Source: Laetmonice hystrix (lineage: Eukaryota). From it: a stretch of DNA of 64,000 nucleotides. Shown here piece by piece: positions 980 through 62,900 of this stretch. The translations under genes and the position numbers were made by a program. The notes beneath the pieces are model-generated. The model searched no databases, was not told the origin of the DNA, and saw only the letters and a program-made list of their open reading frames with translations. The stretch is taken from NCBI GenBank assembly GCA_965235115.1, contig OZ249436.1, forward strand, positions 61,690,001 to 61,754,000. The letters are read 5' to 3'. How positions within the stretch are numbered: the first letter of the stretch is position 1; the number at the start of each line of letters is the position of its first letter.

Positions 980-1131
980 CTAACAAGAGTACGACAAGAG
1001 ATTAACAGTGCTATGACGTGGGCAACTTCAATGTTTGTTTGAATAGTGCTAGTTTTTTTTCTTCTTTTTTTTTTGGGGGGGGGGGGACAAAGAGCTTGAA
1101 AGGTTTGATTGGAAAAGACAGACCAATGTGA

Positions 1132-4588
<3,457 letters not shown>

Positions 4589-23009: not shown

Positions 23010-25483
23010 GAATACACCTTCTTGGGTAAAAGGCAGCCTAGCCAGGCGGTATAAACCATGAAGTTTGGACCCAAACATAGTAATGTAGAACATAACGCCC
23101 CCTTATGGTACATATCTAACTACATGCTTCAGTAATCGACTATCCTATCGTAGTTTATAGGCCTACATTAATGCACTCATTAAATAATTATATGCATGCC
23201 CGCGGTCGACCAGGGCCGTACGTAGCGGGGGGGGGGGGGGCAGAGGGGGCAGTTGTGTGAAAAGGTGCCCTTTTTACGAGCAGGGTGTAAATTCATCCTT
23301 GTGATCAGGATCAGAGTCTACACATGTCTAAGTTTGTCCCCAGCAACCTTAGGCTGCGTATGGCAATGTCGAACACACCGAACTAAAACTATAATAAACT
23401 CTCGCCAATGGGTATTTTTATTAAACAGACCATCCCACAACGACAATAATGCTTTCAGTAAAGTATAGAGTTGCCATTACTAGATATATTACAGCGTTTT
23501 TATCGAGCTAGGCTTACGCTGTTGTGTTTCTGGAGGTAGAAAGCAGTTTGGGCATACATGGCCTAAGCAGAAAGGCCAAGAAATGTTTGAAGTTCGACAT
23601 ACTTCTTTAAGCGCCCCAACCTCTACCAGGCTTCTACTGCAAGGTCGGATCGAGGTCGGCACCGAGGGGAGTGGGTTGGAACTTTGACACGAAAATAAAA
23701 CACACACAAAACTTAACAAATTGGCGGAACATTGCAATAGGCCAAGTTCTTTGGCGTGTGGTTAAGTGTTAGACTCTAAGCTGTTAATTTGTCACGCTCT
23801 TTAATAAAACATCGAATATCATTGCATTAATTTGATTTAAATCATAGATCATATAGGCTACCCAACAGCCATCTCTTTCTTCTCAAAATTGTTAGAACTG
23901 TGAATCGGAAATGTCTTCAGGGAACATGCACCTTCCCGAGAAAAACTCTGCGTGGTAATTGAATGTTATTGCATACAAAGTAGGCCTAACTCAAGATTAG
24001 CCTGCATATTCTTGATGTAGAGCTTGGTCCAAAGGAGATGTCCTATTCAAAAGAGAGAAAGCAAGACGGAAAGAAGAAAAAAATGGGTGTTTTCTCTCAA
24101 AATATTTATGAATGACATTACTTTTTAAACACAATGTTATGAAATTCTTTTGAAAAAGGCCACTGGGTGATCCAAGGGGCCCGGGCCCCCCTTAAATTGT
24201 TCTTTTCCCTCTTTTTTTTTTATAAAGATGCATTATTCGGACCCCTGATACCAGGATTCCAACAAAATTCTTACCGGTACAAAGCCTCCTATATTGTACG
24301 TGATAGTAACATCGGGCCCAAAAGGGCCTTCTCAGTCGTCCAGCAGCAAGATAACTCTGGGCCATGCAGCATTGAAATAGACAAAAAGGGGGCCCGAAAT
24401 GGCCATAATCACAATAATTTTTTTTAGGTGGGCCCCCCCCTTATCAAAATCCTGGATCGATCCCCACTGTAGGTTATTCTACAAATTTCTGGGTTACGAC
24501 CCCAACCCAATATTGTTGGCTTAAAATAACCCAACGTTGGTATAGTGCAGGATTAAACACTTCATTTAGTTACGAGTTGGGTTATTTTTAACTCAACAAT
24601 TCTTTATGTTGCCCATTTTGCCACAAGGCCACACTGAAAGCGCGGTTGCCCAACAACGTGGTGAGTTTGTGAGAACACGGCTGGAAGTATTCGATGTGGT
24701 GTCACCTGAGGTTTTACTCCCAACTCTATAAAGGGAACTTTGAAGCGGGTCCGACGAATGAGGACAACACGCGGAACTTATTGGGACTTTCGGAAGAGTG
24801 CCTGATGCCAGAGATGCGCCAAAGACTCGGTGAAGATTTGAGTTGAGAGTTGAATCGTATTGGCCGGTAAGCTGGTAAGGTGAGAATGACGTACAGTCGT
24901 GCAGTTTGTAGTTGGACTCGGCTTAGTGGTCGCACTTGGTCCATGAACCATGCAGTCAAGCCCCGGCTGGCCATGCACCCGCCCCACGGAAAACTCGAGG
25001 GTGACTGGGCCAGCCTACAACACACGGTGGTCAACTGGTCGTGATCTTGGGGCACTAGGTCCAATCCTTTCCTCAAAATCCCACATTGTAGTCATCGCTT
25101 TATTAAAACGAGGGATGAAAACTTTAAATATGTACATTTAGATATGCACAAGTATAGACGGCGCAGGGCCTACCCCCGCAGACATAGGCGTTGGAGGTGT
25201 GCTGCCAACCCCCCCCCCCCCCAATAATATGTATAGATATAAATATTTTGTTTTTGTTAAATGATTTTATTATGTGAAACCCCCCCCCCCCCCCCCGCCC
25301 CAATTCTTCTACGGCTATTGCAGATTTTTGGGATAGTGCCATTTAAGCCGAGGCGTTTTCCTAGATCATGAAAAAATAGAAAAATAGTTGTGAATTGCGT
25401 TCCCCCAATAACTGAATAGAACAGAGTGGTTTAGTAATAAAATATAGGTTGAATCTAAGCCTTTGACTTTGTATGTCTTCCAG

Positions 25484-28400
25484 GAACAGCAGGTTTTTCA
25501 GTCTTGACAGTATGCCAGACGGGAAGGGGAAAAGGAACATGGATTGTCTTGAAGATATACAACCCCAGCAAGTGATCCAACAGCTCTTTTTGGATTCTGC
25601 CAAAATAATTCCAGGGCTGAATAAATTATTTGGCCTTTTGGTGGCATCTTCAAAAAAGCTTCAGCTATGTGCAATCCACATCAATGAAATGCTGACAGAA
25701 TCAGAAGAAGAATCGTACGTAGACTGGCCAACCAGCCATGTAGGAAAAGAGGGGTGTTTGGGTGAACAAGTGAAGGAGGTCGTGATCAATGTGAGTAAGA
25801 AGATGCTTCAAGGATGCAACCTGACTTCAGTTCATATTGACTGTGCATTAGGTCTTGGTTGGCATGAGAATGAGACCATCTTTGTGCATATAGCTGAGAG
25901 TTTAAACGTACCGGGTCATCAACAATCAACTTGCGATAACAACACTGCCAGCTGTGGCACTGATGAAATTTTGGAAATTTCTAAGAGGTCGCACCATTCA
26001 ATTATACCAAAGCGATCGGTGCTTCTTGGCAGTCCTCCTACTTCCAGTGAAACTGTGAGTGAATTTGTACCTGATCAGTCCAACACTCGGGGTGACATTG
26101 TGGACCATTTAGATGATTCGTACTGTCATCCGCTTACAGAAGCTGCCTGGCCTGAAAATATCACGGCTATAGCAAAGAAAGAATCAAAAGCTTCTTCATT
26201 AGTTGTTATGACTACCACCAAAGATACCTTGAAATCTCCCCCCTTTAAGGCGGTATCCCCTGAAAAATTAACATCAGATGATGATGAGATACAAGAAGAA
26301 AAGGACACCGGTACTTCGAATCCCACAGGGGAAAAAAGAAAAGATTTAAATGTAGGGTCTCCAAATAATAATGTAGATATTAAATTCAGTGAAATTGCAG
26401 GGAACAGTCAGTGTGGCAGTTTATCTGATTGCGTGAGTGAGTCTGCAACAGTTGGAATCACAACACAGAAGGACAAACCAGAAGAGGTAATAGTACTCCA
26501 AAAAAAGGAAGATCATAATAATAAGGCTGATTTGGAGCCGGTGGAAATTCTTATTGATGTCGATGATAGTGAATTCTTTGGGCCAGAACAGGAGGGAAAT
26601 CCAGAAGAAACAGTGAAGGACGTTGAAATTGCCACAAAGGTAAGAAAGACCTTAACTGTTTGGATGCATACAGTTACATTTAGAGCAGAAGTATTGGTTT
26701 TATATGTTTGTGTTTCTGATCTCAGAATCCTTCAGATGAGGATCTGGACGAGGGGCACGTATTCCAGTGTCAACTGTTGGAGGTGAGTGGGCCTTGGTGT
26801 ATAGGCCTATCCCTACCTTAATGATGCTGCCAACATTTATTGGTCAATGTTATTTCTGGGGCAATTGCATACGAGAGAGAAAAAGGGTAGCTCAACTGAT
26901 ACCAGTGGATTTGAAGGTGTATCCCAGCCTTTTTTTCTATGAAACCAATATCCCAGTGTGATCAGGCCCCGGTTTCAGAAAGGCCCTCAGCAGCAAACTT
27001 GAAGCTAAGCAGGACTACGGTGGCCCATGGGGACACAGACACTTTAACTTTCTACCTTGATTTTTCATGGATATTTTCACGGCACGGTAATATCAATGAA
27101 AATCAATCAAACCGCGACCAGGTCTAACAAATATAGATCATACATACTTGTTATGAGGCTTCCAAAGCAGTTTAAGATAGGCCTATAATTAATTGTAGTA
27201 TGTATGACATGCAAAATTAGACCCGTGATTAAATCTAAATACCCCCCCCCCCCCCCCCCATACAGCTAGGTCTGAATCGTGGTGATTTTCATTTCAGACT
27301 CATTTAAAGAAAAAGTGCAGTAAATCTAAGATTGCTATATCTGCTGAGAGTGATGACGAAGAGAAAGATGTCACCGAGGTTGCGTGTCGAGGTAGATTCG
27401 GGTCTGAACGGGTGACGACAGTCGTTAAGGCACCTGTAAGGACACATGAGGATACAGGAGATGACATAACAGTTGGTAAGGTTGATCACTGGAGAGTCCT
27501 AGCTAGCTAGGTTAATGTATAACACAGGGTGTCCCAAAAATTAGACAAAATCTGTGACTGCGACGGGCGACGTCTTTATAGGTGGTACATTTGGGAGACG
27601 GAAGAAACGGGAATCCTGGGAGAAAACCATAGACTATACTCTGCTTGAAGTACTAGTAATGAATATGTTTGGAGATTTGTCAGTGTCACCTGTGGCAAAG
27701 ACGGCATTCTAGGTTTCATCAGATTCCATGTTGCACCTGTTGACAGGGAGCTGTCACGGAGACGTAAGAATGAGATGCTCCTCAGACGGTGGCGATCGGA
27801 GACGGGTGATGTTAAAGGAATCCAGTGCACCAACAGAGCTGGTCTCAGAATGGCAGCAGGACGAACATACTGGGGACATCATCGGCATGCAGCGGTCGAA
27901 AGTCGCAGTGCAGCGGTGCACCCCAAAACATGCTCTAATTAAACCACTCATCGTTCATAACGAGCTAAGCGTCCAAAGAGATGTGAGATGGCCCACGGAT
28001 AACCGAACGTGGCCTTTGCCTCGAGAGGGACTTCTTGGCAATTGTCCTGGAGAAATACGCAATGCACACTGGGAGCTGAACGACAGTGGTTTTCAGTGGC
28101 CAAGACATATTCCGGGACCAAGAACAGTTGCTGGTTGGCCTCGAGAGATGGTGGTGGAGGAAACAGAAAGACAGGATGAATACTTAGCAAGGCCAGGAAT
28201 CCCTCCTTTACTTGAAGTAGAAAATCAGACTGAACATTGGAATAGGCAGAAATTGTGTGAAGAAAACTGTGGAGACATGTATTACAACCAACGGCTTCAA
28301 AACGAACACTTTACACATGATTCATTTGTAGGGAACTCTCAAGTTATAGAAAGGCCACTTGGATCCCAGATCTCTGTAAGACCAGGTCCTGGTGACCAGC

Positions 28401-28879
28401 CGTTTGAACGACCCTGTGAACTCTTCAACTGCGAACAGTCCCTCAGACAACGAACAGCACAGGAACTGTGGACGCCAGAACTACAGCCACAGAGACGACC
28501 TGGAGCGCACGAGCAATGTCCAAACGCCATAGGTTACAAACTCCTGATGGCTCCATGGCAGACATTCCGCAAGAAATATGAGGACGGGCGTGTTGGGATA
28601 CCACCTCAAGCACGTCTTGCCTGCTGGCCGCAGAGGCTGCCGCCCCGGCCACCCGGAAGGCTGGCCCCATATAACTCGTTTGACTACCGTAGAGGCTTTC
28701 TTCACAATCAGCCCCAACCATTCTATTTGAGAGGGCCCCAGCCCAGGGCTATGATGAATCGTTGCCGTGAGAAGATACAGGAAACTGAAAATTTCAGCCA
28801 GATGCCTGATCTACGAAACTGGCTGGAAAATACAGGTCGCCATGGCAATCTAGAAAACCATGCAGAGACGTGGCCTTAG
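25484..28879 (+). CDS. Uncharacterised orphan protein (~845 aa if initiated at ATG 25513): duplicated N-terminal ~45-aa module, acidic linker, Pro/Arg/Gln/Trp-rich C-terminus
   Basis: Exons 25484-26639 (cag|...AAG|gtaaga), 26726-26782 (cag|...GAG|gtgagt), 27298-27475 (cag|...G|gtaagg) and 27723-28879 (TAG). Phases 0/0/1 join without stops. The 5' end (upstream exon vs ATG 25513) is uncertain. No named domain recognised. Confidence 0.72.
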
Positions 28880-31101: not shown

Positions 31102-31122
31102 CAAGTGTAGCCTGTATAGGCC

Positions 31123-32031
31123 TACTCTCACGTAAAGTTAGTGCAATATATCTCACGTACCCTCACACACTCTCACGTAAGGTTAGTGCAATCTCACGTA
31201 CCCTCAAATACTCTAACGTAAAGTTAGTGCAATCTCACGTACCCTCAAATACTCTAACGTAAAGTTAGTGCAATCTCACGTACCCTCACATACTCTCACG
31301 TAAAGTTAGTGCAATCTCACGTACCCTCACATACTCACGTAAAGTTAGTGCAATCTCACGTACCCTCACATACTCTCACGTAAAGTTAGTGCAATCTAAA
31401 GTTAGTGCAATATATCTCACGTACCCTCACATACTCTCACGTAAAGTTAGTGCAATATATCTCACGTACCCTCACATACTCTCACGTAAAGTTAGTGCAA
31501 TCTCACGTACCCTCACACACTCTCACGTAAAGTTCGTGCAATCTTACGTACCCTCAAATACTCTCACGTAAAGTTAGTGCAATCTCACGTACCCTCACAT
31601 ACTCTCACGTAAAGTTAGTGCAATATATCTCACGTACCCTCACATACTCTCACGTAAAGTTAGTGCAATCTCACGTACCCTCACATACTCTCACGTAAAG
31701 TTAGTGCAATATATCTCACGTACCCTCACATACTCTCACGTAAAGTTAGTGCAATCTCACGTACCCTCACACACTCTCACGTAAAGTTCGTGCAATCTCA
31801 CGTACCCTCAAATACTCTCACGTAAAGTTAGTGCAATCTCACGTACCCTCACATACTCTCACGTAAAGTTAGTGCAATATATCTCACGTACCCTCACATA
31901 CTCTCACGTAAAGTTCGTGCAATCTCACGTACCCTCAAATACTCTCACGTAAAGTTAGTGCAATCGCACGTACCCTCACATACTCTCACGTAAAGTTAGT
32001 GCAATCTCACGTACCCTCACATACTCTCACG
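31123..32031. repeat. 41/45-bp tandem minisatellite, ~21 copies
   Basis: Unit tactctcacgtaaagttagtgcaat(atat)ctcacgtaccctcaca, with recurring variants (gttcgt, caaata, cacac). Confidence 0.97.
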
Positions 32032-32055: not shown

Positions 32056-33599
32056 TCGGGTGTGCCAAAAATTTTGGAACACTCTTTTCTTGACTGTAAC
32101 TTCTATAATTTTGTTTACTCCAATGTGAACATGATATCATCTGGTTATTTGGGGTCTGTGGTATAAATTTCAGATAAATGGGCCCAAACGTCTAAAAATA
32201 AGGCCATTTCTAAAAATTCGTGTCAAAAATTGCAATGACGGACCAGGGTTAACGTCCGGTTTTTAGTTAGTCAAGACTGGGATGACTGACTTGTGTTATG
32301 GTCTCTCATTGGCTGACTTCATACCCAGTTTTGTTGGTATGTGTCCCAATTAAGGCAGGGTTGTTGTCACTATCTACAGATGTGTAGTGAGAATGTATGA
32401 AATGCCCCCTGCCAAAACGGCTCAAGTCAGTGAACTGCCCTGACGTCACGCGTAAGAATCCCACGGCCGTATCACTCCCACACCATAGCGTTACGAAAAC
32501 GGAAGTCTTTCCACCGGACTATTCGGCAGCCTACTGACTTGTGCCGCCAAAACTTCTATTGGGATTCCCTCGGCCATATTCGAATGACGTCATAATGCCC
32601 GAGGGAATCCCGAATGTCCTAACTGTCGGCCAATCCCAATTACACCATTTGGGATTCCCTGTCTGAAAATAGATAGGGCCTAGGCCTAAAGGTCGCAAAC
32701 AAAAATTCGGCGAGAATGAACTGAAGGAGAAAATTCGGGAAAGGTGGGAGGGAATTTCAATTAGGGCCTACTCTAGGCCCCTAGGCCTAAAAGAAGTAGG
32801 CCTATAGGCCTACCTACATTCAAAAAGAGACTAAGGGCTGTGTGTGAACAGTGAACACTGAGGATGGGGGTTACATCGATCACCGTTTCCAAAACCCTTC
32901 CTTTTTAACTGAAATAGGCGGGTGACACTTACAGTGTGATGGTTCTCCGCAGTCTCCGGCATTGCATTTTTCGACGTGTGATGTTTGATTTGTTTCCACA
33001 TAGGCCTAAAGAGTTTTTGGCCTATCTGCCTAAAATTTTCACCACAAAATGCTATTAGGCCTATAGGCCTAACCATCTAAGGCCCTAGGCCTAACATAGG
33101 CCTCGGTATGATGTCCTAAATATCAGTGACAAAGTATGAAAATTGTAGAAGCTATAGGCTAGCAGGCTATAGTCAAATAAAGAGTGTTCCAGACACAGCG
33201 GGACCAACTCTGCTGAGGGCGCAATTTTTGACATGCAGTTTTAAAGGTGCTATTCGTCTCGCACAGAATGGCATTTCTCCTATCATACATTGTGCACATA
33301 GTACTAGAAAAAATTCCTACTGATACCATTGACCTGATAAACCTTCTATTAGTTTGTGTGCAGCATTTGAAACCTATCTCGGTGCGCACCGAGATAGAGC
33401 CATTTCCTATGGTGGGGTGTGTCAGGGTCTCCACAGGCCTTCTGAGAGAGCCCCATTTGTGCCGTTATCCATGAAAAATTTTGATTTCCTTTGTTGTGAA
33501 TCTATTTCCATGATAGGTGGGATCACATAAACGTCAACAAAATTAAAAATAAAAATATTGAACTTTTTTTCACGAATAGCACCTTTAAAAATGAACCTA

Positions 33600-33792: not shown

Positions 33793-35715
33793 TAGGCCTA
33801 CTACCGACGCTACACTAGATCTATGGGGCCCTATAGGCCCTGATCGGGCCCCTAGACGCGTTTAACCCCGTTTTTGCAAGGTCGGCGAGGTTTTTATTGA
33901 AACACTCGCTCTCCCTCCATCCAGACTGCACTAGTCCAAAAGATATCTTTGGCAAAGATATCTTTTGATATTGAAACGCACCCCCTCGCGTGGACCAGCG
34001 CCATAACCACACAAAGGGGGCGCTGTGTAGGATTTTTTTGGCTGGCGCCACCTAGTGTTATGAAAGACAGAGGCGCACATGAGCTATAAAGGTGTGTCAC
34101 GCAAGAAAGGGTCGTTTGAAACGTTTGGGAAAAACATATATTTCTATTTCGCTGCACGTGGCGTTGTTCTTTACTCTACAGAAAATCCGAAGGCATCATC
34201 GGGTTCGTGGGAAAATGCCCTACTCTGGCATATTAAATTTGTAAACATAACCCAGATATTTTATGAAACGGCGATGTTGTGAAGATAAAAAATCGACCAT
34301 AACGTTTGCCGAAACATTACACATGCCCTAAGACACCCACTGCATGTACAAAACTCATATAAATTCCTTCAAAATATTTACAAAAATCAGATGTCAATTT
34401 CAATCAGCTTTCCAATGATATAAATTTGAACAGGATCCGTTGGGAAACAAGGTCAAGAGGCGCCAATTTCCGATTTTCCGAAAATGCGCTTTTTTTAGGT
34501 AAAACGCGGCGAAGAAAACCCTATCCTTGACAATCGTGCATGCGCTGGCGTGTATTCTTACCAAAAACGTCATATTACCTTTCAAGGAAGACAAATCCAT
34601 GTGTAATTTGAGTTTACAAAGATGAAAATCCTTGTCTCAATGTTCTGGAAACTTTAGCATAGACCTTGACCTCTCACCCGACCCAGTTTACTCATCTTCT
34701 TATTGGTTTAGAGATCAAACAATCGGGACGTAGTGTCTATGACGTAGCCATTTTGAAACTTTTCCCGACCAGTAGGCGCGTCATCGAGCTAAAGACTCTG
34801 TGTTTGTTCTGCTGCACAAGAGTCTGCAGAGTCTGATTGCTTGTAACAGTAGGGCACAAAATATCAAGAATGTTTTCAGGGAGGCAAAAATAACTTTCTT
34901 ATCTAATGTCTCCTTTTTAAATCGTCGCAAAACCCTACGGAAGGGACCCCAGTCATCGAGTCGACACAGATCTTTGTCACGCAAGTTGATGAGCCAAATC
35001 ATCATGGCAGCCAGTACATCATGATGGATTCTTCACAGTTTTTCGACGGAAGTTTAGTGTATATATCTAGATATTGACAAACACTCCTGGATGCTCAAAA
35101 TAACAGCAAAATATGATCTCTGCAAAAGTCTGTGTTCGAGGTAGGCCTATTTGGGGAGTTGGAGAAGTAACTATAGCCTAGATATAATCATGCGTGACAT
35201 CGACCACGATCTGAATCTGCCGCCGACATCGCTGAATGCTGATATAAAACTTTCAATTTACTTTGCCGCTTGTGGATTCACCAGCACTGGCGCACCGGTA
35301 CGCTGGTGCATGGCATGGATCCTTAAGTTATAATTAGATTTCATTGACATTCATCATCATACTTTTAAAAGACAAGGCACCATATTGAAAAAAACAAAGC
35401 CCAACCCGTCCGAAATCCAGGGACACCGCCGGGACGATGACCGACTCGCCCGACACCATTCTCACGGGGAGGTGCCAGGGCAGAGGAAGCGCCGGGACTC
35501 TGGGCCGACCAACCCGCCCGCCTGCATGTCATGGATGGCGGTAACGAACTCTGGCTGAAGCGAGGAAGGGGGGGGGGGGGGGGGGTCCTGTAGTAGTATA
35601 ATAGATTCCTAGATTTCTGTTTCTAGAGATCTAATCTAGACTAAGAGAACCGTAGGCCTACTACAAAATTTAGAAATAGACTCTGTAGATCTACTTAGTA
35701 ATAGATCTAGATCTA

Positions 35716-36505
35716 CAGAGTGAGTAAAAAAAAAAACTAGACACTTTTTAAAAGGATCATTGTTTTATTGTGTACCAATATATTTTTGATTGTACTTATG
35801 CAGCAACTCTTCCTGCATCTTTTGGTACCAGTCATGCTTGTTTGGTTTTCATGCGTGACCGCACAGGAGACAATTAAAGGACAAGGGTGAAATCTGACCT
35901 GCACCAACTGATCAGAGCTGGATATGAAATGGATAGCCAAGTAATTTTCTTGACACCCTGGTTTAATCAGTTAATTCAAATAACACACTTGCACATGGGC
36001 CTCATTAGGCCTTCTTGGCACTGCAGCAGTATAATGGTGCGTCCACAATTCACTCACAAAAGAGCCTTCGTTGTGACTGAATATCACCGGACACAAGGTG
36101 TCACAGAGGTGTTTCCAAATGTAAGATGCCCCTGTCGTCAAACAGTGTATGCAAACATTCAGAAGTACCAGTGCCAGGTTGAGGATTAAGCCGCAGTGAC
36201 AGTGACAGCCGCAGTGAAATGGAAATGACATAAATGTTTTAGTCAATGTTATGTTTTACAGAGGATAGGGCAGGGCTATCTGTTGTGATTTTTGTTTATA
36301 TCCAGCTCAGTCAGTTGGCTCAGGTCAGATTCCACCCTTTAATTGTCTCCTGTGCAGTCATGCATGAAAACCAATCAAGCATGACTGGTACCAAAAGATG
36401 CAGGAAGAGTTGCTGCATAAGTATAAGCAAAAATATAGTTATATATTGGTACACAGTAAAACAATGGGCCTTTTAAAAAGTGTCTAGTTTTTTTTACTCA
36501 CTCTG
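35716..36505 (+). mobile_element. Mariner-family internal-deletion derivative, 790 bp, TA TSD, ~195-bp TIRs, with a transposase HTH remnant
   Basis: ta|cagagtgagtaaaaaaa ... ttttttactcactctg|ta. Internal 36034-36171 reads MVRPQFTHKRAFVVTEYHRTQGVTEVFPNVRCPCRQTVYANIQKYQ, resembling the N-terminal HTH (DUF4817-type) of mariner-like transposases. Confidence 0.88.
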
Positions 36506-37241
36506 TAGACTAAATTATAAAAGATCTATATATAGCCTAGGTTTTCCTAAGTCTCTGGTTGTGTTACTACTGTTCTATATTATAAGTTTTAGTATAATGT
36601 ATAGATCCTAGACCTAGTCTACAGATAGCACACTTGGAATAGGGGCCTATAGGGTATGTCACTGACAGTAGATCTATAAATATAATACATAGTGACAGGA
36701 CTGAGACTTTGAGAGTGAGACAGAGAAGTCGACAGGAGGCACCCCCAAAAATATTTCGGGAGCCTCCCCCCGACTAATAACCATTATTAGAGTAATTTCT
36801 ACACATAGCATAGGCATAGCTGAGCCAGAACAGAAATACTTGTATTAATTGTTAATATTACTATTAGTGAGTCTATAATAGTCAGGGGCGGATCCGGGGG
36901 GGGGGGGTTCCAATATGTTTATTGTTATGACCTAATGTCATGACATGAAGTCAGAATAATGTTCATGCGTGGGGGGTGGGGAGAAGATATTTGAAGAAGG
37001 TAAAAAACCTCTGCTATTTCCTAGCATCTGGTCTGAAGACAGCAATTGTGAAGTTTCTCAAAGCAGTCAGGCTTTAAGTTTTAGTCTACCAATAACATGC
37101 GTGGGCCAGGAGGGGGGGTCCTCCCCCGAAAATGTTTGAATTTAGAAGGCAAAGAAACGCAATTTCCCAGCATCTGGAGATATAAATTGTGAAGTTTCTC
37201 AAAGCATTATTAGGCCTAGCCCACCAATAACATGGGCTGGA

Positions 37242-37843: not shown

Positions 37844-40801
37844 GCTGTCATTGTAATAGTACATGTACTATCTTTGTGTGAGTTTTCAGTCTCATGCTTG
37901 AATATACAGATCAACACGACAACAGTTCAAGTATTATTAATGGTGATGTTTTCCGTACAAGGATGAACCATTCCTTCTTCTTGAATGTGTCGTTGTAAAT
38001 TCCATGATTTCTGTGAGATTTCTCAAGTACGGTATTCCTCCCATTTATTTTACTGTGCAAAAATCCAATACACTCAACTTGTCTACTCTTCCCAGGGTTT
38101 CCTGACCCATTCAAACCCAATTAGCTCAGCGGAAGTTGTGCCAGAGCATAAAAACTGAAAAGGGGATTCACCCTGCCGTATATATAGGCAGGGCGGGGGT
38201 CCAGAAAATCTTTATTCAAGAAATTAACATAAATAACACAGGCACCTTTTTTAAAATTGGCGAAAAGGAACCGTTATGGGGACATGGTGTACATGTCATG
38301 TGGAAAGTCAATTCATGTACATTGGTATGCCATTCATTCAAGAATGTGAAACAAAAAAATTGCTGGAATCTGGCAAATAGGCCATGCCATAGTAACGCTG
38401 CATGACAGAGCTAAGTTATTTGATTATTATTTCAAAAGGGGTTGAAAATTGTAAGTTGTCTAGGAAATATTCTGCTTGGTTTCAGTTTAAAAAGAGATTA
38501 TGCCAACAATACCGCCAAAAGGCAGTGGTAGAAAAAGAATTTTTAAGTCTTTGTGTCAACACCTGAAAAAAAATGCTTACATTCTAAAGATGGATAAGGA
38601 GAAAGCAACACTGTTGCCACTTTGGTTTACACTTTTTTCAAACTGAAAGTATTAATTTTAAAGAGTAAAACTACTTTTTATACTTTTTTCATACATTTTT
38701 CATGTGTTTTTCATTTTTTTTATACTTTTTTCTGGAAAATCGGGTAATTGAACGACATTGATGATGCGACTCTACAGGTGTGGTTTGCTAGTCTCCGAAT
38801 AAGAGTGGTGCGCGTTATGTTGAGTCGGTTTTTTTTGCTGAGCAGCACATAGAATACACATTTTAGGCTCAACTTTTCTCAACAATTGTATACATGACTC
38901 CTGAAAGCTTGGTATTGAGAAGCCTAAAATGAGAACAAATTACAAACCAGGGTTAATTCATGTACATGTATCTTCATTTTACTACTTTTTTCGACAATAA
39001 TTGAATTTTGATACTTTGTTCTTGAAACTGAAAGATTCTATACATTTTTGTTTGTCAAACCCAGAGTGATGGCACTGAAGTCTGGCCCTGGGGTTCATAT
39101 GTACACAAAAGAGTATGAATGACAGTGAAAAAAAAGAAAAAGGTATCAGACAAAAAAAAGTATATTTAAAAAATAAAAATATTTTGGAGCAGTAAACCAC
39201 TTACATATTGGCACAAGAGCTGATTGGCGGATTCTCTCTACATATTCAGGGTTCTTGCTTGAACAAATTCTGGCAACCCATGGACGTACATGATTAAATC
39301 AGAACAGAGCAAATCCTGTCCATGGGAGGGCCTCAAAGAATGTAGGCTATTTAAACATTCATGGAGGGTATTCACTACACAATCCATAATAAATTTGAGT
39401 TCTGTCAAAACGCATATAAGTAGGCCTATTCAACCTAAATGAACATTTCAGCAAAATGCAGGAAAAGGTAATTACCTGTTTAAAATGTACAAACTGACAA
39501 CACAAATAGGATTTTCTATGACCTCTGAATGTCAGGGGAACTATGCATGATTCCTTAGGCTATGCCGAGGTTTCCAAATTCCCCTCACTGGCTTGACTTG
39601 AGGTCTCGTCAGCAGCCCCCAAGCAACCAACGCCCTCTTGTCAGGGCTCACACAGTAATTGGCCTACTAATAGTAGCAATAACCCTGACATTAACAGTGT
39701 AAGGAGAGCAATAAATTCTTTTCTGTGGGCACACGTTTCGTTCTGTAAAGTTCTGTAATTGTAAAGTTCTTGCTAACAGAAAGGTCTTGGCCAAGTCAAG
39801 ACTTGGGTATATTTTTTTAATATTTATTCTGTCAGGAAAACGAAGTGCCTTACTTTCAGGCTTTTTCCTTTCTTCCTTCGTTTTTAACAACTTGATAAGT
39901 TGTGGAATTTTGCTTACACTCCAAAGGGAACTTCAAAGCACAAAGTTATTGTTCTGTGGTTTCCCTGATTGACTACCCTGGTAATGTCCCGCCCTGAGAC
40001 TGAGACTTTGACTGGGCCAGTGGGGGAGTCACAGGCGCACTGCAGTCAACTACAGCTGTAGGCCTACGACGTTGTCCAGGCAGAGGTACGTGTCGCTGTG
40101 CCTGTGACTGTGTGAGGCTGTGTGTGGTGGTTGGGGGGGGGGGGGGGGGGCACTAAAGAAGGAATCAGTACAAAACTGTGCAAACATACACAGGCTTAGA
40201 TTTGCTTTCACTAGGTCTGTCAATTCTGTTTCATTCAGGCCATTTTTATGATCATTCCTCGTTGGAAGCCAGCAGCGCCCTCTTCTGACTCTTGAGTGAC
40301 CTGACTTGAGTCTGTCACTCTGTGTTGACGGTGATGTGCTTTTCACTGTTGACCTATACTATAGGCTTCATTCGCAATACCGCAGGTTAAATCAAATACT
40401 AGGGTAAAAAAACACTACTGTCTGATTATGTTAGACATCATAATGGCTTCATTTATTGCAGACTAGTGTAGGAATAGCTTATTAATAGCCGTTGCTCTAA
40501 GCATCATAGATCCGTCCCTGACAGCGGATGGGCGATAATAGGGGAAACGAGCGCTTCGAAAAGTAAATAAACGTAAAATTCGAGCTAAAATACGCCCACC
40601 AGAGAAAATGACTATATTATCGAGGTCGTTTTAAGTGTTAATATTGGTTCTGATAACTTATTTATAAATTTGAACAATTTTCAGCTTCATAGGGCAAATT
40701 ATTGAAACGACCCTTTCTTGGGTGACACACCTATAAACATGTCATAGGACACCATTCATACCTAGCTTCCGGTATGTGTTAGTGGAGTTTGGACAGAGGA
40801 C

Positions 40802-46941: not shown

Positions 46942-48422
46942 CCAGTAGATGGCAGCATGGGTACTCGCGTCCCAGCGCACAGGGTACATACGACCCGCAT
47001 CGGACTCGAAATGTTTTCTTTTATGGCAATCTGTGTAAAGTTCATGTTTAAATATGCATTTGATATGCCCTTGGCCTTGGCCTACATGTTTTCGAGATTT
47101 TCATAATTTCATTGGGCCACACCTTCAATAGATTCCTTATTAGATATTGATTCCATTTATAACTCGGTCTTCGGGCTGGAAAAATAATTAGATAGGCCTA
47201 ATCTATTCATCAGTGTCTAGAGAACCTACCAGTCCCTGTGGAGTTCGGGCTCCGTCTTGTGCTGCCACCTAACGACGCCTGAAATCAATTATGAGACTCT
47301 TTCATTAGCCTAATTTGTGACAGTCATTTTTCTGTGAGCCAAAACAACATTCAGTAATTTCTCTGCAGTCCCTCACTTTGAAACGTCAATAGAAAAAGAC
47401 GCTCGTAACCGGAACTTCTGTGTGATTACCGTACTTCAAAAAATCTCTGGTGGGAAGGGAAACTACCAACGATGATTCTAGTGACTATCGCTAGGTGGCA
47501 GCAGTGAATGGCTGATGCCACGACGGCCCCGTCATTCGCGGCAGGTGACCATTTTCGCGGTTTTAGCAAAAGGCACTTTTTCTAAGCCTGTCTTTACAAA
47601 TCACAATTATTCAGTAACAATGAATGGTAGTCAAGGTGACCTATTTCAACTTGAAGGTTCTTCTTGTGTAGGCCTACTTAGCCTATTAGATAGGCCTATA
47701 TCTATTCTTGGATGAAGCTGGTCAAGACTGACCTTAAATTTTTTTCAAGGGCAAAAATACCAACATGGTGGTTCGCTTAGAATATCTAACCTGATCCTGT
47801 AATATAAACAGAACCGCCTATAGGCTAGGCCTATAATTGTAGACCTATGGCTATGTAGGCCTATAGGCTACTTGTAGAGTCTATAGGCGGTTCGGTTTTT
47901 ATGATGGTGTTGCCAAAAGGCGAAAGGGTCATTTAGGCCTAGATCTAGGCCTAGATCTATATGGAATGCTTAATTAACTTACAAACGTCAATTAGGCCTA
48001 GGCCTATTACGTTTATAAGAGCATGTTAAGAAGTGACCCACTTTGTGGACGGTCTGGGACCATGCCCTATTTTGCTATAGATCTAGGCCTAGGGCCTACA
48101 AGGAATCTAGTTGTTTTGCGAACCGGGCGGTTCGGTTTAGATCTATAGGCCCCCCTATGGCCTATAACCGGATGGTTCGCTATACCAGATTTTAAGCAAA
48201 GCGAACCCCTTGGCCAAAAGAAGCCGCTAACTAGGCGCCCTTTATTGTTGAGGTTTGGGTGTCTGGGTGTTGTTGTGGGTTCTCGGTAGGCCTACTTGAC
48301 CAAGATACTGTAAAGTGGTTCCGTTTACCTCGAACGACCCTAATCTGATTGGTGCTTGCGGTAGGCCTACTGCAAAGCCGCAAGGAGAATTATTAATATT
48401 ATGTCGTAAGCAGATGGCGCTG
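46942..48422. promoter_or_regulatory. Cluster of CTCF-like motifs between the UQCR11 promoter and the DEG/ENaC gene
   Basis: CCAGTAGATGGCAGCA at 46942-57 (+), CGTTAGGTGGCAGCA at 47274-60 (-), TCGCTAGGTGGCAGCA at 47488-503 (+) and AAGCAGATGGCGCTG at 48408-22 (+). Motif match only. Confidence 0.4.
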
Positions 48423-48457
48423 CGATCTTTTCTCCGGTGAAAAAAAGGCTAGCTGAG

Positions 48458-48934
48458 CACTCTCCGGTCAGAGGTCGTTCCCTTCGTTTAATCTCTGCCA
48501 CACATTGGGTAGGCCTACTGCCGTTTGAGTGACCCCTGTGGCTGACCTGACCTAGAAATCTCCGACAGGCCACCCGAACATTGCTCGAATCGTGGCTGCT
48601 CGATTTTGCTGAGGTATAGATCTAGGCCTACTCTTGTATAGGCCTACTTTTAAAGCACACGCAAACATCCAAATCGTCGGAGAAATCATCTGCAGCCGCT
48701 ATGTTGGAACGGAAGTAGGCCTACCTAGAATAGCATTTCGAATCATCCCGAAATTGGCTAACCGACTTGCGACCAGCTGATTTACCTCCGCAAATGTATT
48801 TTCTACCATACAGGACGGCCGACTTGGCAAAAAACGGGGTTAGATCTAAACGCGTATGGGCCCGATTTTGCCCGTAAAACGTCATGTGTAGGCCTATACT
48901 AGAGGAGCGAGCCCCTCTGCATTATGGGAGATTG
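48458..48934 (-). mobile_element. Dispersed repeat, copy A (homologous to 62507-62829 on +, and partly to 33845-33888)
   Basis: Blocks aatctcccataatgcagaggggct, ttttacgggcaaaatcg, gtcggccgtcctgtatg and gatttctaggtcaggt...ggggtcactcaaac...gtgtggcagagatt are shared in opposite orientation. Confidence 0.85.
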
Positions 48935-50438
48935 TGTACAGTCGAATTTTAATATTTTTTGTGCCTCCGATTTGCTGCGACAGCCAGACCCAGAGCAAAT
49001 AATTCATGCCGCTCGAGGGCCGAGAGTAGGCCCCTATTATTATGATTATGATTATGATTATGATGATTTTTTTTAAGAGTGTGTTCATATAGATGTTCCT
49101 TCAACCCCTTCCAACGATATGCAGCATTTCGACATGGAGATCTTGAAGAGAGTCAACCCGCAATATTTGCTTTCACTCATGAGAACTCTGGTTGATCAAT
49201 TGGATGGGCGTTTCTTGTCAATAGCGCAAGGGGCACTACCTTTAACAGTCTAAAAATATTTTCTGTTTTCCGACTAGGCTAGTGCCTGTCCCAACTGGGG
49301 CGCTTGGCAAATACCCGGGTGGTGAATATGAATACAAATGCTATAAGCTTGTTTCAATCGTCATGAATGGGTCATTTTCCGCAGAGCATGCAAGACTCAA
49401 GTCTCGACAAACACAGTATGACAGTTATGATTTCGCGATAATTTCTCCCTACAAAATAAATTGATCTCATAGAACATAACAGATGTAGGAACTAGATTGT
49501 AAGGATAAACTCATTCAATAGGCCTATGCGCCATATAATATATAGGCTTATATGCAAGGAAATTGAAAACGACTTTTTTCGGTTACTTTTGTAAATTTAT
49601 GCAGAAATGAATTTACTCAGTACTTCATTCTCACCTCGCGCCTTTTAAAAATTCTTCTTTCATTATTCATGACCAGTTTCAGAAACACATAACTTTCCCC
49701 TACAGCCGGCATGGACGCTTGAATAGGTTCCTATATTGAGTTCAGCAAACCAATAGTGCCATTCGCATGCTCCGTCAATGCCATCGATTCCGGGAACCTA
49801 GTGTTTGCGAACGCAGTATAACGGGATGGTGCCAACTGACAGCTGCTCGCCCGTCCTCACACTCTCAAGGCGTCCTCTTCAGCCCGGGTTGCTAATGCCA
49901 TCCGATTCTTTACCAAGTATTTGCTTCGCTTGAAATAATCGAAAATTCAGAAGTTAAAACAAGCACAGTGGTTGACTTGAATTATTCTGAGGATCGCGTT
50001 GATCCTATGAATGTCAAAAAGCATTTCTCGATCGATGTTATCTTCCTGGCGATGGTTGGGCGTCCAGAGCTTGCAAGCACAGGTTTGACAGTTGTTGGAA
50101 AAACTTCACGCGGTCTACTGAATGTGGGAAGAGAAAATCGTTTGACATATTTCCAAGATGACTAATTATCTTTACATGGCAGTGTGAGATTATAGATCGA
50201 GGAGACTTGAAGGTCGTCACTGTGCTCGGCGGGAAGACGGGTGCACTGAGAGCTGACGTGTGCTACTGAAGACGTCAAGGACTTTACCGTAATAAGGCCT
50301 TTTGTAAAGTTTCGCAAATATAGGGCTTACTTCGTGTTTAATTTGAACTTGACCAGCAAGAATTAGAATTATCTAGATCTATAGTCGGCTATAAGTGTAT
50401 CATTAGACTTCCTGTCGGGAACTGTGAGTTTTGCTGAT

Positions 50439-53400: not shown

Positions 53401-55894
53401 AAGAATCCCTAACGTTAGGGGCCTAGTACTGTACTGGTGTATGATTATGCCTTAGGCGTACATATCCCGATCTGCATTACGTTCAATCAATTATATTTGA
53501 GTAGCACATCACGCTAAATCTATAGGCCTACACGAATTCAGTAGGTGACCAGACGCGTGGTATGATGCGTTAAATACTGTAGCAAAGATATGTGGTAAAC
53601 CCTCTCACAGAACGCGATGTTCGTCCTTGCTATGGTCTGGCCTACTTCTATTCACGGTCATAATGTCTTACATATTAGATTGAGGGCACATGATGTTTAC
53701 ACATCAATTGATCTCAAAAATATCTCGTAATCTTCAGCTTGACCCTGGATATGTCAAACAACTCTTGTATGCCGTTCTCTTCTCCTTCATCAATGAAGAG
53801 ACGATGGAAGTGGTTGGTCATCAGCCCCAGGACTTCATCCGGTCCTGCGCATTTAATGGCATCCGGTGCAACTACACGTGTGTATTATGTTGATAATATG
53901 AACAATTCACCGAATTATCAGCGTTTGATTTACAATAAGCTGTTAGGCGTGCAATGTTTTACAGCGGAAACAATGTAAACTGAGCAGGTTATTAAATAAT
54001 TAGGTTTATCGAAGTTATAGAAGATTTATTGAGCTGTGCGTGGAAGATGTATTAATTGCAAATATAGTCCATCCAATTAAAGTAATGGGCTTCGAATAAT
54101 CATGTTGAACACAGGACAGTATCTCAAACGCAAGTTGTTCATTTGTACCTTAAATATTGGAATCGATGACGCAGACTTATTGATGATAGAGCATGGTTAA
54201 AAACTGGAAACAAAATGAATTCTACTTTTAGGAAGAAAGCATACTCGCTGGAACTGAAGGTATTAGTGATTATTTGTGTTTTTTAACATGTCTAATTAAA
54301 AAGCTGCCGTACCATGTCTCATGTTTTGTTGGAACAAAATGAGAGCAAGATATAGTTATCGGCTTTGGCAGCTCTCAGTGTAAACTTATTCACTTTACAT
54401 TCAGTTATTTCGTGGAGTTCCAGACAGATTCGTTCGGTAACTGTTTCACGTTCAATGACGGATCAGACGGACGTCCAATACGTCACAGCAACCAGTCTGG
54501 TCCGAAACATTGTAAGTAGAATCACTTCAACCTGCATGTAGATCGCTTCGTGCGTCATAGAAACCCCCCACAAAAAATCGTAGCACTGTGGATGGATCGT
54601 CTGCATGGAAACGGTTTCAAGAAAAAATATCACTGACAGAAAAAAAGCGCACAGATAAATCTCCATTCAGCTTCGCCATCACCAACTTTACCCGAGTGTT
54701 ATTTGTATTAGCGGAGGGAGAGGCCGGTGATATGTTGAGAGGTATCGGCCTGAGTTGACAGTCAGACCAGCAGTCTCTCGAGTGCCCGTCGACTGCGCTA
54801 GCAGACCAAGCTATAGGTGCCATAAAACTGCCGCCATGTCCCGGATGACTATTTCTCAGTTTAAATCATTCCGTCTGTTCCTAACCTCGGGCGTGTTTAT
54901 CTAATCTAACCTAAAGGGTAACGTTTCCAATGAAACAATGTTATTTTCAATCTTGGAAAGAATCATTTTCTATTCAGGCACATGGAAATTGCAGCATCGA
55001 AACACAACACGAGCAGTTGTTTGTAAGAAAGTTCAAATTCCGATTGATGAGCTTCCGCCATGTTCTTGTAACGGTAGCCTATCCTGAGAACAAATCGACA
55101 TCGATCAATGCTCAAGTGTTTAACCGTATCGTGTGTAGTTACATCTCGCTGTCTCTGTCTCTCTATGATCTCGGTCGACCCAGCATTGTCATTGGAGCTG
55201 AACGTCGAGCAGTATGAGTACGTCACGGAGGTGTTCAGTACGGCAGGTGTACGGCTCATAGTACACGACCAGGGCATCAGGCCATTCCCACAGGAGGAAG
55301 GAGTTAATGTTGCCCCTGGTTACCACACGTACATCGGGGTCAGCAGGGTACGTCTTATATAACAGGCATCGCGACCGGCGCCAAGTGTCATATTTTTGGG
55401 GAGATCTAGGCCCTACCGCTATTCAGAAAGTGACTAACTTCTTGATGAAGTCTAGGCCTATAATAGATAAATCGGGGTTTCATGGGGGGGGGGGGGGGAC
55501 TTTGATGTAGCCAAATTTATGTCCACCCAGAACTCTAATATCCTGACACATTTTCTATCTTATTCCTAATTACAATAGCTATGATTATGTATCCTCTAAA
55601 ATAAACGGAGAAAGAAGGGGGAGAACCCCGCCGCCCCCCCCCCCCCCCCCAGCCGCATTGCATATTGTGTTGTTACGTATGGAATGGTTTAATAATAAGT
55701 AACTGTTATTGTCCCTATAGAGTGGAATTCATCGCTTGTCTGAACCTTACGGAAACTGCACTGACGGATCTCTCTCACAGAATCTGCCGGGCTATAAGTA
55801 TTCAGTAATGGTTGGTATCCGGGCATCATCTGTAGGCCTAATATCTTAACTTCTGACGATCGGAACGAAATCTATACGCGCACATTGCTCTCTG

Positions 55895-59952: not shown

Positions 59953-62900
59953 CTAAATGTAGTCCGCCCGGTGGAGACAATCACAACAAAAGAAGATATT
60001 TCGTTGCTGACTGTTTTGTTTGAGGAGTTTCCCGGTGCCGTTAGATGTCGTCGAAGTCTGGACGTCACTATCCCCTTCTTCACCTAAGGCAAAGAACAAA
60101 TGGTATGTACACATGAGTACAGATGTCTAGAAACACTAACGCTGAGCGAATCCGCACAGATACTTTCAAATAAATTCGACTTACCGTCTGTTCTTGCTGT
60201 AAGGCGGTTGAGCATGAGACCTAATAGTTCTAATACCTCCGTTCGTTCTCTGAAAATTGATGACATTGAGGGTATAGTTATAAATGACGGGATCTGGATT
60301 CTAATTAAAATTAAAAACATCCGTCGATATTCCACTGTACATTTTTTTGGACATAGTAGAAAGCTTTAAAAGGCCATACTGAAAGTGTAAAACGTACGTA
60401 TCTAATACTGTCATGGCTAAGTCATCTGTCTTGCTCTCGCCTGTTTTGGACGGATGGACACGTTGGCCTTTCCCCTTTCCTTTCTTCTTGGAACCTCGAC
60501 AAAAAAAACAGGATTATTAAAACTAGGTAAATATAGTATGTATGAGAGCAAAGCTCTGTGGCAACGAAAACTGCCTCAACTGCGAAAAATGTCACAATCA
60601 CAGAGTTTGAGACAATTTTCGTATGTATGATACGAAAAATGTCTCAAAATCTCTCGGTGGGACATTTTCCTATGTACTGCCTGCGAAAAATGTCACAATT
60701 TCCTTAGCGAGACATTTTTCGTCATTGAACCCCTTGAACCCCAACCCACAACTTAGGAATGCTACCTATTGGCAATAACCGTGGGTTGTACAGTGCAGTA
60801 TAGCCTACGTAACAACCCTTCTTACTTCTCGTAAAGTGATGGCATCGTATCAGGTTCAGGTGGTTTTCTTATCTTCTTATTTCACCCAGATCATCTTCAC
60901 CACCAGTACTAAACAGGTTAATGGCAATGCTAACTCTCAACTATATCTTCATTAGAAGTTATGTCCATGTATCTTTATGTTCACTCTTCCTATCTTTTAT
61001 TTATTTACCTATTTGTATAGACATGAGTAGGGAATGGCCGTGCATGTTAGCCAGGATGTTTAACTCCTTGGCGTACATCTCGAGGCAGTCGGTGAGTGAG
61101 GACACGTACTTGCTAGCCTCGCCGTGCAGCGCCTGTCTGTAGCAGAGTATTATAAGTTACACTGGCATTTATAACTGAAACAATGTTGAGAAGAAGTGCA
61201 AACTTTCTGGAACAGTTCGGATGGGATTGAAAAATCAATGAGGGAATTGACCACCCCGATCCTCTGCCCAGATCCGACGCCCCCTGCTCTGCTGTGGTCA
61301 TGGTTGAATAGAGAAGTTAAAGCTCATTACCTTGTCATCTTCGGGAGAAGATTGTCTCTGATGTGCCAGCAACATTCCATGCAGGTTCGCCGACTTGTGT
61401 TGAGCTCATCGTACAGTTTACGAGCGTTCTTGTCGGGCACGCCCACAAACATGAGGAGCTGATGTAGGCGGGCAAGGCGGCGGTTGAACTGGCCGAACAT
61501 CTGGCAACAAAAATTGTCGGCGCCGTTAAAATTATCATGACCTTCTCATATTTTTACGCCTGTCAGTATAACTGGTCAAAGGTCAAAGTTAAAAGGAAGA
61601 AAAGTCCGATATTGACTTTGTTCTCGTTAACAGTATGCAGGACCCGTACATACAGGTTTGCAGAGGTATAGACCCACTGATGTAATCCAACCATGCCTGC
61701 ATTTAGAAACTCAATTCACGCACCGGTTGCATGTTTATCTCAGTAGCTCAAACCAGTTCCTACACAAAAGATTCTTCCTTAAAAAAAGGTTCCTTTTGTG
61801 ACCAAAACGTAAACATGGATAAAAGAAAAAAGAACTTCTGGAACTATTATATATATAACGTCGTTTCAGTGATGCTGCTGAATAGGTTCAAGGCTATAAT
61901 TCAGAAAGAGTTTAGGTAATGGAATCTATTTTCAGAGTCAAGCGCATGTATTTCCACCTTTGAACGGCAAGAAATTAATGGCGGGAAGATTGCGAAGGGA
62001 ATGCCCCCAGTGCACGAGTAGGAAGGGCCCTGTGTAATGAGTGTATGCGATATACCACTTCTTTTACTCGAGCGTCCAAATACCATATAACGATCGTGAA
62101 TCTTGTTTGTGTCATCTCTGTGAATTGATCGTGTCCCCTGGAAGCCCGTCACGCATACACGAGACGTGAGAGAGGACAGAGGGTGCTGATTGAGTACACA
62201 GACCTGCAGGGATGTCGCCCTCACAGTGATCCAATCACAAAGGGACCGTGTTATTGATCCGTCTTCGATACTCACATCACTTTGACACAGACACTCGGAG
62301 ATTAGGGACTATCGCATGACATACAATTAATTTAAATCAATGAGTAGGCACAATCTGGAAGAACACAAATTGAAACATATAACCATAGACTATACTGGGG
62401 GAGCGGAGGGGAAAATAGGGATAAGAGACACTCTAAAGACCCCTCCTTGAGCTATCGGGTCGATACTAAGCGTACAAAGCGAGGCAGATTTGGTAACATT
62501 ACCAGTCAATCTCCCATAATGCAGAGGGGCTTGCTCCACTATACCCCTCTGCCACACCTGACCTTTTACGGGCAAAATCGAGCCCCTACGCATTCAACCC
62601 TGTTTTTGCAAAGTCGGCCGTCCTGTATGGTATCTGTAAAATTTAACGTACCTCTAAATCCCCAAACCGAGATTATACCAAGTGACATTCATCGTACAAA
62701 AGAAATATCTGATGAATCGGCAATGTTCGGCTGTCTCGGTCCGGGATTTCTAGGTCAGGTTAGGGGTCACTCAAACAGCAGAACCCAGGGTGTGGCAGAG
62801 ATTGAATGAAGTGAACTCTGCCCAGAGTGATTACCAGTAGGCCTATACACAACGTACGGGATTGTATTCTGGAGCGACTCAAACAGAACAGATCGATAAA

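Follow-up and report, generated by a model that had tools for sequence, protein, structure and literature searches.

A single palindromic octamer, TAGGCCTA, is crowded into the 64,000-nucleotide stretch of the Laetmonice hystrix genome analysed here (the window), and the question is what could have written it there so often. We counted 55 copies in the window (43% G+C, zero N), compared with 0.69 ± 0.91 expected, and none of 100 dinucleotide shuffles reached 55. The word ranks third among the 8-mers of the window, after the homopolymers G8 and C8. The initial annotation had reported dozens of copies in 64 kb where one or two would be expected, in line with this count, and had suggested a k-mer enrichment check, in which three further words also exceeded the shuffle expectation by 6–14 times: TAGATCTA (14 copies, ∼1 expected), TACATGTA (8 copies, 1.3 expected) and TACCGGTA (7 copies, 0.6 expected). 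Globally, in the 627 Mb of the genome (35 contigs), TAGGCCTA occurs 168,757 times compared with 3,469 for a control word with the same letters in reverse order. The corresponding numbers are 79,253 and 28,579 for TACATGTA, and 37,955 and 9,864 for TAGATCTA. The density of TAGGCCTA was 223 per Mb in ∼296 kb fetched elsewhere in the genome, and the 860 per Mb of the window amount to ∼3 times the genome average. A literature search for the TAGGCCTA word returned primers and unrelated uses only.

Among the 55 copies in the window, the 20-bp flanks are mutually unrelated, indicating that the motif was not spread by a single repeat family. Short-read unitigs from three public runs were identical, with zero differences, to the palindrome-rich segment at 47906–48083, so the richness in TAGGCCTA is not an assembly artefact. 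A small share of the genome-wide count does not represent independent events, since one copy was amplified together with a satellite: on contig 1, between 19.5 and 90.4 kb, TAGGCCTA recurs every ∼865 bp across 70 kb, once per unit of the array.

The palindromes and their derived forms, referred to below as scars, concentrate in intergenic stretches of 0.4–2 kb, where they chain via common TAs. Two hot spots that had been singled out by eye proved real on counting, with eight TAGGCCTA copies in 32670–33110 and 17 in 47660–49530. The hot spots and two further chains are as follows.

47660–48300, no strand: hot spot with 10 perfect TAGGCCTA, 4 TAGATCTA and numerous decayed variants (TAGGGCCTA, TAGGCTA, TAGCCTA, TAGACCTA), some of them chained
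32670–33110, no strand: hot spot of 440 bp with 8 perfect TAGGCCTA and additional decayed forms
10160–10173, no strand: TACATGTAGGCCTA, a CA-type and a GG-type scar with one TA in common
35702–35715, no strand: TAGATCTAGATCTA chain ending in a TA that serves as target duplication for a Tc1-type MITE (35714–36507)

The hot spot at 47660–48300 sits between a cluster of small genes, which ends at ∼46.8 kb, and a sodium-channel exon at 50.4 kb (Pfam ASC match). Nine pairs of palindromes in the window have a TA in common, and chains include TAGATCTAGGCCTA at 48617 and 48078 and TAGGCCTAGGCCTA at 47993 and 52829. The concatenation at 48617 had been noticed from the start, as had a palindrome adjoining the TA of the MITE at 35714. 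We found both as described, the latter as TAGATCTAGATCTA next to a 794-bp element whose ends read TA/CAGAGTGAG (here and below, a slash marks the boundary of an element).

The polarity of the palindromes can be read from an old dispersed repeat of ∼560 bp (894 first-look candidates in the genome), the copies of which have their own flanking duplications. We aligned the window copy with 29 others, 30 copies in all, and built a consensus. Five TAGGCCTA lie inside the window copy, at 48510, 48623, 48639, 48716 and 48889.

48458–48934, + strand: old repeat copy (copy A), ∼75% identical to other copies of the dispersed ∼560-bp repeat, which has hundreds of copies
62480–62860, − strand: second, shorter copy of the ∼560-bp repeat, with homologous sites that lack palindromes
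48510–48517, no strand: TAGGCCTA gain at a GTAC site; the consensus is gggTActg, the window copy has gggTAGGCCTActg, and 27 of 29 other aligned copies have plain TA
48617–48630, no strand: TAGATCTAGGCCTA, in which a GA-type scar is chained to a GG-type one through a common TA, with a further TA before it, replacing CA of the consensus (gctgaggCActcttg)
48639–48646, no strand: TAGGCCTA after an extra TA, with ∼5 adjoining consensus bases lost (consensus cttgTTGTTTActttt)
48716–48723, no strand: TAGGCCTA gain at a GTAC site (consensus ggaagTAcctag), with plain TA in 22 of 24 other copies
48841–48848, no strand: TAGATCTA gain at a TTAA site (consensus ggggtTAaacgc); the insertion is absent in 21 of 22 copies aligned, most of which read ggggtTAaacgc
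48889–48896, no strand: TAGGCCTA with neighbouring consensus bases deleted, compared with consensus catgtgtGGCAGAGGGGtagtgg

A genome-wide pattern search anchored on both sides of the 48510 site recovered 205 copies with TA and 13 with 3–33 letters. The 13 modified copies carry TAGGCCTA and TACCTA three times each, TAA twice, and TAGGCCTG, TAGGCCTATA, TAGGGTA, TACAGTAAA and an irregular 11-mer once each. They are mostly GG-type scars, and TAGGCCTA or a near form of it is found in five genomic copies. Given a consensus with plain TA and 205 TA copies versus 13 modified ones, the palindrome is derived and not ancestral, judging from the aligned copies. This multi-copy polarisation bears out the suggestion of the initial annotation that some process turns TA into TA-NNNN-TA. 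It had been conceded there that the palindrome might be ancestral, or that one repeat family's consensus might explain the enrichment. The second explanation fails as well, since the consensus of the ∼560-bp repeat lacks the palindrome and the 55 flanks are unrelated. The two pairwise differences on which the suggestion had been built were also reproduced: gggTAGGCCTActg of copy A corresponds to gggTTctg in the copy at 62.8 kb, and its ggggtTAGATCTAaacgcg to ggggtTAaacgcg (other strand) in the fragment at 33.86 kb.

Other copies of the repeat have been modified in their own right. At the 48716 site, TAGGCCTA is present in copies L017 and L022 and TATA in L009 and L028, and the gain at 48841 is also present, independently, in L021. 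Throughout the alignment, independent gains comprise TAGGCCTA in L014, L017 and L022, TATAGGCCTA in L028, TACAATGTA and TAGATCTA in L021, TACCTA in L025, and TATA in L004, L009 and L028. The scars at 48617, 48639 and 48889 are not clean TA gains: they come with an extra TA, or a few consensus bases have been lost or replaced. Overall, the GG type accounts for ∼9 of ∼27 private insertions of at least 4 bp in the 30-copy alignment, that is, about one third of such insertions in one old repeat family.

We tabulated words of the form TA-G(n)-C(m)-TA by their numbers of G and C. The combination (2,2) was found 109 times, compared with 3.2 expected, and (2,1) and (1,2) together 54 times, compared with 25 expected; (3,2) and (2,3) contributed 12 and (4,2) and (2,4) seven, and (1,1), (1,0), (0,1) and (3,0) were at expectation. 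The targets show a clear preference, GTAC being used at 3.2 times its share of TA sites and GTAT/ATAC at ∼2 times, with TTAA at 0.2 times and TTAC at zero, compared with 6.3 expected. TACCTA, TAGGTA, TAGGGTA, TATA, TAGGCTA and TAGCCTA were found as minor forms, either among the derived alleles or as over-represented words. The gains lie at TA, with TA kept on both sides and the 2-bp target duplication retained, and they are accompanied by a spectrum of minor products: one-sided forms, a bare TA duplication, forms one base short and flanking deletions (as in the scars at 48639 and 48889). The letters between the TAs correspond to the first two letters of the ends of resident elements, namely CA/TG and, in one copy read, GG/CC.

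The fixed two letters per side, the kept TA, the one-sided forms and the two-fold symmetric target together point to an excision footprint of the Tc1 type. In our view, TAGGCCTA was probably left behind by the excision of TA-targeting cut-and-paste transposons of the Tc1/mariner/pogo kind, as were the rarer TAGATCTA, TACATGTA and TACCGGTA. Transposon excision was among the mechanisms put forward in the initial annotation, and it fits the TA duplication, the two letters per side, the one-sided forms, the symmetric targets and the CA and GG ends. Its other two proposals fare worse. Hairpin repair would leave P-nucleotides that mirror a variable flank, but the core is a constant GGCC irrespective of the flank; for the same reason, we rejected a hairpin footprint of the hAT/Transib type, which predicts flank-dependent letters. 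Templated insertion does not fit, as a nearby template is absent.

According to the excision model, an element would insert at a TA, which would be duplicated. On exit, the transposase would cut the 5′ ends two bases inside the element, leaving each flank with TA and a two-base 3′ overhang that consists of the element's first two letters. Because two GG overhangs are unable to pair, they would be filled and joined by end joining, giving rise to TA-GG-CC-TA, and elements with CA ends would yield TA-CA-TG-TA.

Excision of Tc1 and Tc3 in Caenorhabditis elegans leaves the footprint TA-CA-TG-TA and shorter forms. The scars described here resemble these in having TA on both sides, two letters per element end, a palindromic 8-mer and one-sided or shortened minor products, and the identical scar, TACATGTA, occurs here as well, matching the resident elements with TA/CAGT ends. 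In contrast to C. elegans, the dominant scar is GG/CC, pointing to a pogo-type element. Furthermore, excision footprints such as those of Tc1/Tc3 are usually known as rare revertant alleles, whereas the scars described here have been fixed ∼170,000 times and rank among the commonest 8-mers. Sleeping Beauty and mariner elements leave footprints of the form TA-C(A/T)G-TA, which result from three-base overhangs. Likewise, TACAGTA and TACTGTA are mildly enriched in our data, and TACAGTA-like alleles are present at the 48510 site. Their three-base overhangs pair and produce 7-mers, however, whereas the GG scar is of the 2+2 form with non-pairing overhangs. A hyper-abundant palindromic octamer is also known from cyanobacteria, namely HIP1 (GCGATCGC). 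Like HIP1, TAGGCCTA is a dispersed 8-bp palindrome that is over-represented tens of times; unlike HIP1, it resides in a eukaryote, and the origin of each copy is readable as a 6-bp gain at TA.

A plausible GG-ended source, by its sequence, is an L077-type pogo element in the same genome. The locus L077 on contig 13 holds, at 917–5884, a 4,968-bp pogo-type element with the ends TA/GG...CC/TA (one copy read). Its left end reads TA/GGTAAGCGTGCC and its right end, reverse-complemented, TA/GGTAACTGTGCC; the terminal inverted repeat agrees at 22 of 26 positions, starts with TA/GGTAAG and has TA on both sides. Beyond the two TAs, the adjoining bases are not the same on both sides, so that the duplication comprises TA rather than TNA. 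A 912-aa ORF matches DDE_1 (PF03184) with 85.9 bits at residues 61–198 (cut-off 22 bits), and an upstream 161-aa ORF gives a weak HTH_Tnp_Tc5 match of 18.9 bits, below the cut-off of 22.2 bits. Four loci with long ORFs give one and the same partial DDE_1 score, L077 being the copy that we read. The homologues are of the pogo/Tigger type, named tigger-derived proteins, and contain PF03184, many of them together with PF05225 or PF03221. The L077 element resembles pogo/Tigger elements in its DDE_1 domain and, in the copy read, in its short terminal inverted repeats next to a duplicated TA; given the weak match, a Tc5-type HTH is a candidate further feature. Unlike the five other pogo families read in this genome, it begins with GG and not with CAG, and its ORF is long (912 aa).

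Two homologues on Logan contigs from other samples are 50–57% identical in the catalytic core and have homologous terminal repeats, one ending in TA/GGGGAACATGGGG on both sides (TA/GGGGAAC) and the other in TA/AGGTAAG. The GG pair is invariant across the six aligned ends of the L077 element and these two relatives. From the form of the scar, the transposase of this type probably cuts with a two-base stagger. In ∼360 kb of the genome, the repeat of the L077 element was matched nowhere else, and MITE derivatives did not turn up. The sequence read contains many examples of the empty and of the scarred state, and a filled allele in none of it. Among the elements read, we did not find one with GA...TC ends that could be the source of TAGATCTA. 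The L077 element itself contains three TAGGCCTA copies (at 5404, 5420 and 5540), located subterminally, with the HTH ORF on one side and the right repeat on the other.

We also considered other resident elements. All five ordinary pogo families that we read end in TA/CAGT, and the Tc1 (DDE_3) families in TA/CAGT or TA/TACTCTG; the TA/CAGT ends explain TACATGTA, and the lack of GG excludes both groups as sources of TAGGCCTA. Two weak DDE_3 families were rejected because their ends lack TA or read CTATAG, and mariner (PF01359) because it yielded 7 degenerate hits only. A scan of the window for TA-flanked inverted repeats beginning with GG or GA found none. The palindromes at L006 and L017, which we examined as mini-elements, turned out to be merely long hairpins or local repeats. 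In a 2.3-kb Tc1-like family (L042–L045, L051), the ends are TA/TACTCTGTCC and the outer flanks are palindromic (CTAG, TTAA); its predicted 2+2 scar, TATATATA, is itself ∼5 times enriched.

The PHIS transposons (PIF/Harbinger, ISL2EU and others) usually have GG ends, and their target duplications are TWA, AT (as for ISL2EU), ANT, CWG or TNA, with no PHIS group using TA (PMC4482050). Harbinger-type sequences are very abundant in this genome, with 720 first-look DDE_Tnp_4 candidates. A GG-ended Harbinger-type MITE at L021:547–879 has ∼60 copies, with ends that read TAGG or AAGG, as TWA predicts. PHIS elements thus share their GG termini with the scar but differ in their duplications (PMC4482050), and we rejected them as the source, given that the scars occur at plain TA (GTAC/RTAY) and that TTAA is depleted. 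A 10-kb DDE_Tnp_4 repeat was set aside since it has no terminal inverted repeat, and in two single Harbinger/PHIS copies clear ends were lacking. In the L021 MITE (ends GGCTGAGGCC), the middle base of TWA often differs between the two sides (left TTA, right TAA), which is unlike a simple 3-bp duplication.

To date the activity, we compared paralogous copies that are 0.5–3% apart (∼57 kb in total). Among these recent events, TA had become TAGGCCTA in one copy of a 10-kb repeat, TACATGTA in a single Tc1 copy out of five, and TAGGTA in one copy of a pogo element. Across ∼360 kb of the genome, we found 121 perfect TAGGCCTA copies (3.9 expected) along with an excess of ∼47 one-substitution variants, that is, ∼47 one-letter variants per 117 excess perfect copies, which implies that ∼70% of the scars are intact. 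Together with the one or two GG-type gains in the ∼57 kb of paralogs, this suggests a roughly steady formation of scars over the last 5–10% of neutral divergence, until recently, albeit from small numbers.

The number of GG scars calls for an explanation of its own. The excess over the control is ∼165,000 for GG scars and ∼50,000 for CA scars, even though CA-ended families are far commoner among the elements read. Either one GG family has been extraordinarily active, or other GG-ended elements have gone unseen. The 8-mer count understates CA-type excision, because many CAG-ended elements leave 7-mer scars through their three-base pairing overhangs. Scars may also vastly outnumber elements, since a low-copy element that moves without a net gain in copies leaves one scar per jump. 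The L077 element family or its non-autonomous derivatives appear to have written most of the ∼170,000 GG scars, steadily and until recently. By simple arithmetic with assumed rates, ∼170,000 fixed scars over ∼10^7 generations would need about one germline excision per hundred gametes. A more specific version, which we regard as rather unlikely, is that the GG scars are more than the passive residue of an ordinary family: they would come from a low-copy pogo-type transposase of exceptional activity, which might be domesticated in part, and which would have entered and left sites at a rate of about one per hundred gametes over millions of generations, with a preference for intergenic or promoter hot spots as well as its own old scars. 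The frequency of chains is roughly as expected from repeated hits on few TA sites at the local density; a liking of the transposase for its own old scars is possible. If the version with an exceptionally active transposase were true, clusters of TAGGCCTA would map, as fossils, the chromatin that was accessible in the germline, and a part of these clusters may have been co-opted as palindromic regulatory sites.

Could the palindromes have been written without a transposon? A nuclease might make two-base staggered breaks at TA, with fill-in duplicating the TA and a G-preferring terminal transferase or polymerase adding G to both 3′ ends ahead of joining, resulting in TA-G(n)-C(m)-TA. Graded forms such as TAGGGCCTA, TAGGGGCCTA and TAGGGTA would suit such a writer, as would a genome in which long G and C runs are unusually abundant and in which GG scars far exceed the GG-ended elements seen. 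Untemplated addition of G would, however, populate the neighbouring cells of the table, and the table speaks against it, with its peak at exactly two G and two C and no excess at (1,1), (1,0) or (3,0). The cores GATC, CATG and CCGG would need other rules, CATG corresponding to the ends of resident elements, and a GG-ended TA element does exist in the genome, which is why we find a writer of this kind decidedly improbable. The scarcity of visible elements relative to scars, and the very uniform form of the latter, could also be explained if germline-limited, TA-bounded GG...CC elements were cut out during development, like the internal eliminated sequences of ciliates, so that a somatic assembly shows scars and few elements. 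This is barely credible, given that intact Tc1, pogo and GG-ended elements are found in the same assembly, that the scars accumulate substitutions as ordinary germline DNA does (∼47 excess one-letter variants per 117 excess perfect copies) and that they are inherited within duplicates, as in the case of three TACCTA copies on one chromosome.

The clustering of scars in intergenic hot spots might instead suggest that TAGGCCTA is a binding site, for example in promoters, which was multiplied by selection and for which the gains at TA are incidental. Selection is unable to create a fixed 6-bp insertion at TA, though, and the same gains are found inside decaying repeat copies and transposons. Clustering is equally expected from insertion into open chromatin combined with the loss of scars from exons, and we judge selection for function to be very unlikely as the origin of the palindromes. 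Lastly, some copies do lie in satellites, such as the ∼865-bp array at the start of contig 1, as would be the case if the palindrome were part of one abundant repeat's consensus or an artefact of assembly or library preparation. With the unrelated flanks of the 55 copies, a ∼560-bp repeat consensus devoid of the palindrome, its presence in independent short-read unitigs and the existence of mutated versions, we give this explanation practically no weight.

We return to excision footprints as the preferred reading. The mechanism is already known for TA transposons, and it is the scale that is unusual: a single transposon chemistry would be a major source of indels, and of a dominant 8-mer, in an animal genome. 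The scars would provide a countable record of cut-and-paste activity that is invisible in copy numbers. For annotation, this calls for caution, in that clusters of TAGGCCTA should be treated as scars and not as binding sites until shown otherwise. The candidate GG-ended pogo-type transposase may be highly active and could be of interest as a tool.

Several further features of the window and of the genome were recorded along the way. The two commonest 8-mers of the window, GGGGGGGG and CCCCCCCC, reflect long G/C runs. Runs of at least 9 nt number 119 in ∼330 kb, have unrelated flanks and vary in length between copies that are 1–3% apart (examples are 1075–1086, 5832–5843, 23227–23240, 27242–27259, 35568–35585, 40133–40150 and 55634–55650 in the window, and others at L063–L066 and L076). 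We rejected them as ends of elements, as TA does not precede the runs. A satellite at 1–979, truncated by the start of the window, consists of 13.8 units of 71 bp with 99% identity, and a 41-bp array with a 127/168-bp higher order occupies 31123–32031, with a TAGGCCTA at 31117 adjoining its start. Two intronless ORFs on the + strand, 25473–26786 (437 aa) and 27728–28879 (383 aa), are located among TAGGCCTA copies and C runs. Searches for Pfam, PDB-sequence or Atlas relatives returned zero matches for either, and in the lack of recognisable relatives we rejected them as transposases; they could be orphan genes or pieces of an unclassified mobile element.

Beyond the window, a ∼9.9-kb unit (L063–L066; contig 2, ∼40.533–40.546 Mb, and contig 6, ∼19.726–19.738 Mb) is 97–99% identical across two chromosomes. 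It contains a DDE_Tnp_4 ORF and a subterminal inverted motif ∼30–40 bp from each end, with a terminal inverted repeat being absent. On contig 12 (∼27.56–27.93 Mb), intact DDE_Tnp_4 ORFs of 363–399 aa recur every ∼13 kb, more than 25 times, and on contig 1 (∼26.03–26.10 Mb), DDE_Tnp_4 ORFs recur every ∼7 kb. Both series are tandem arrays of a transposase-bearing unit and not dispersed copies.
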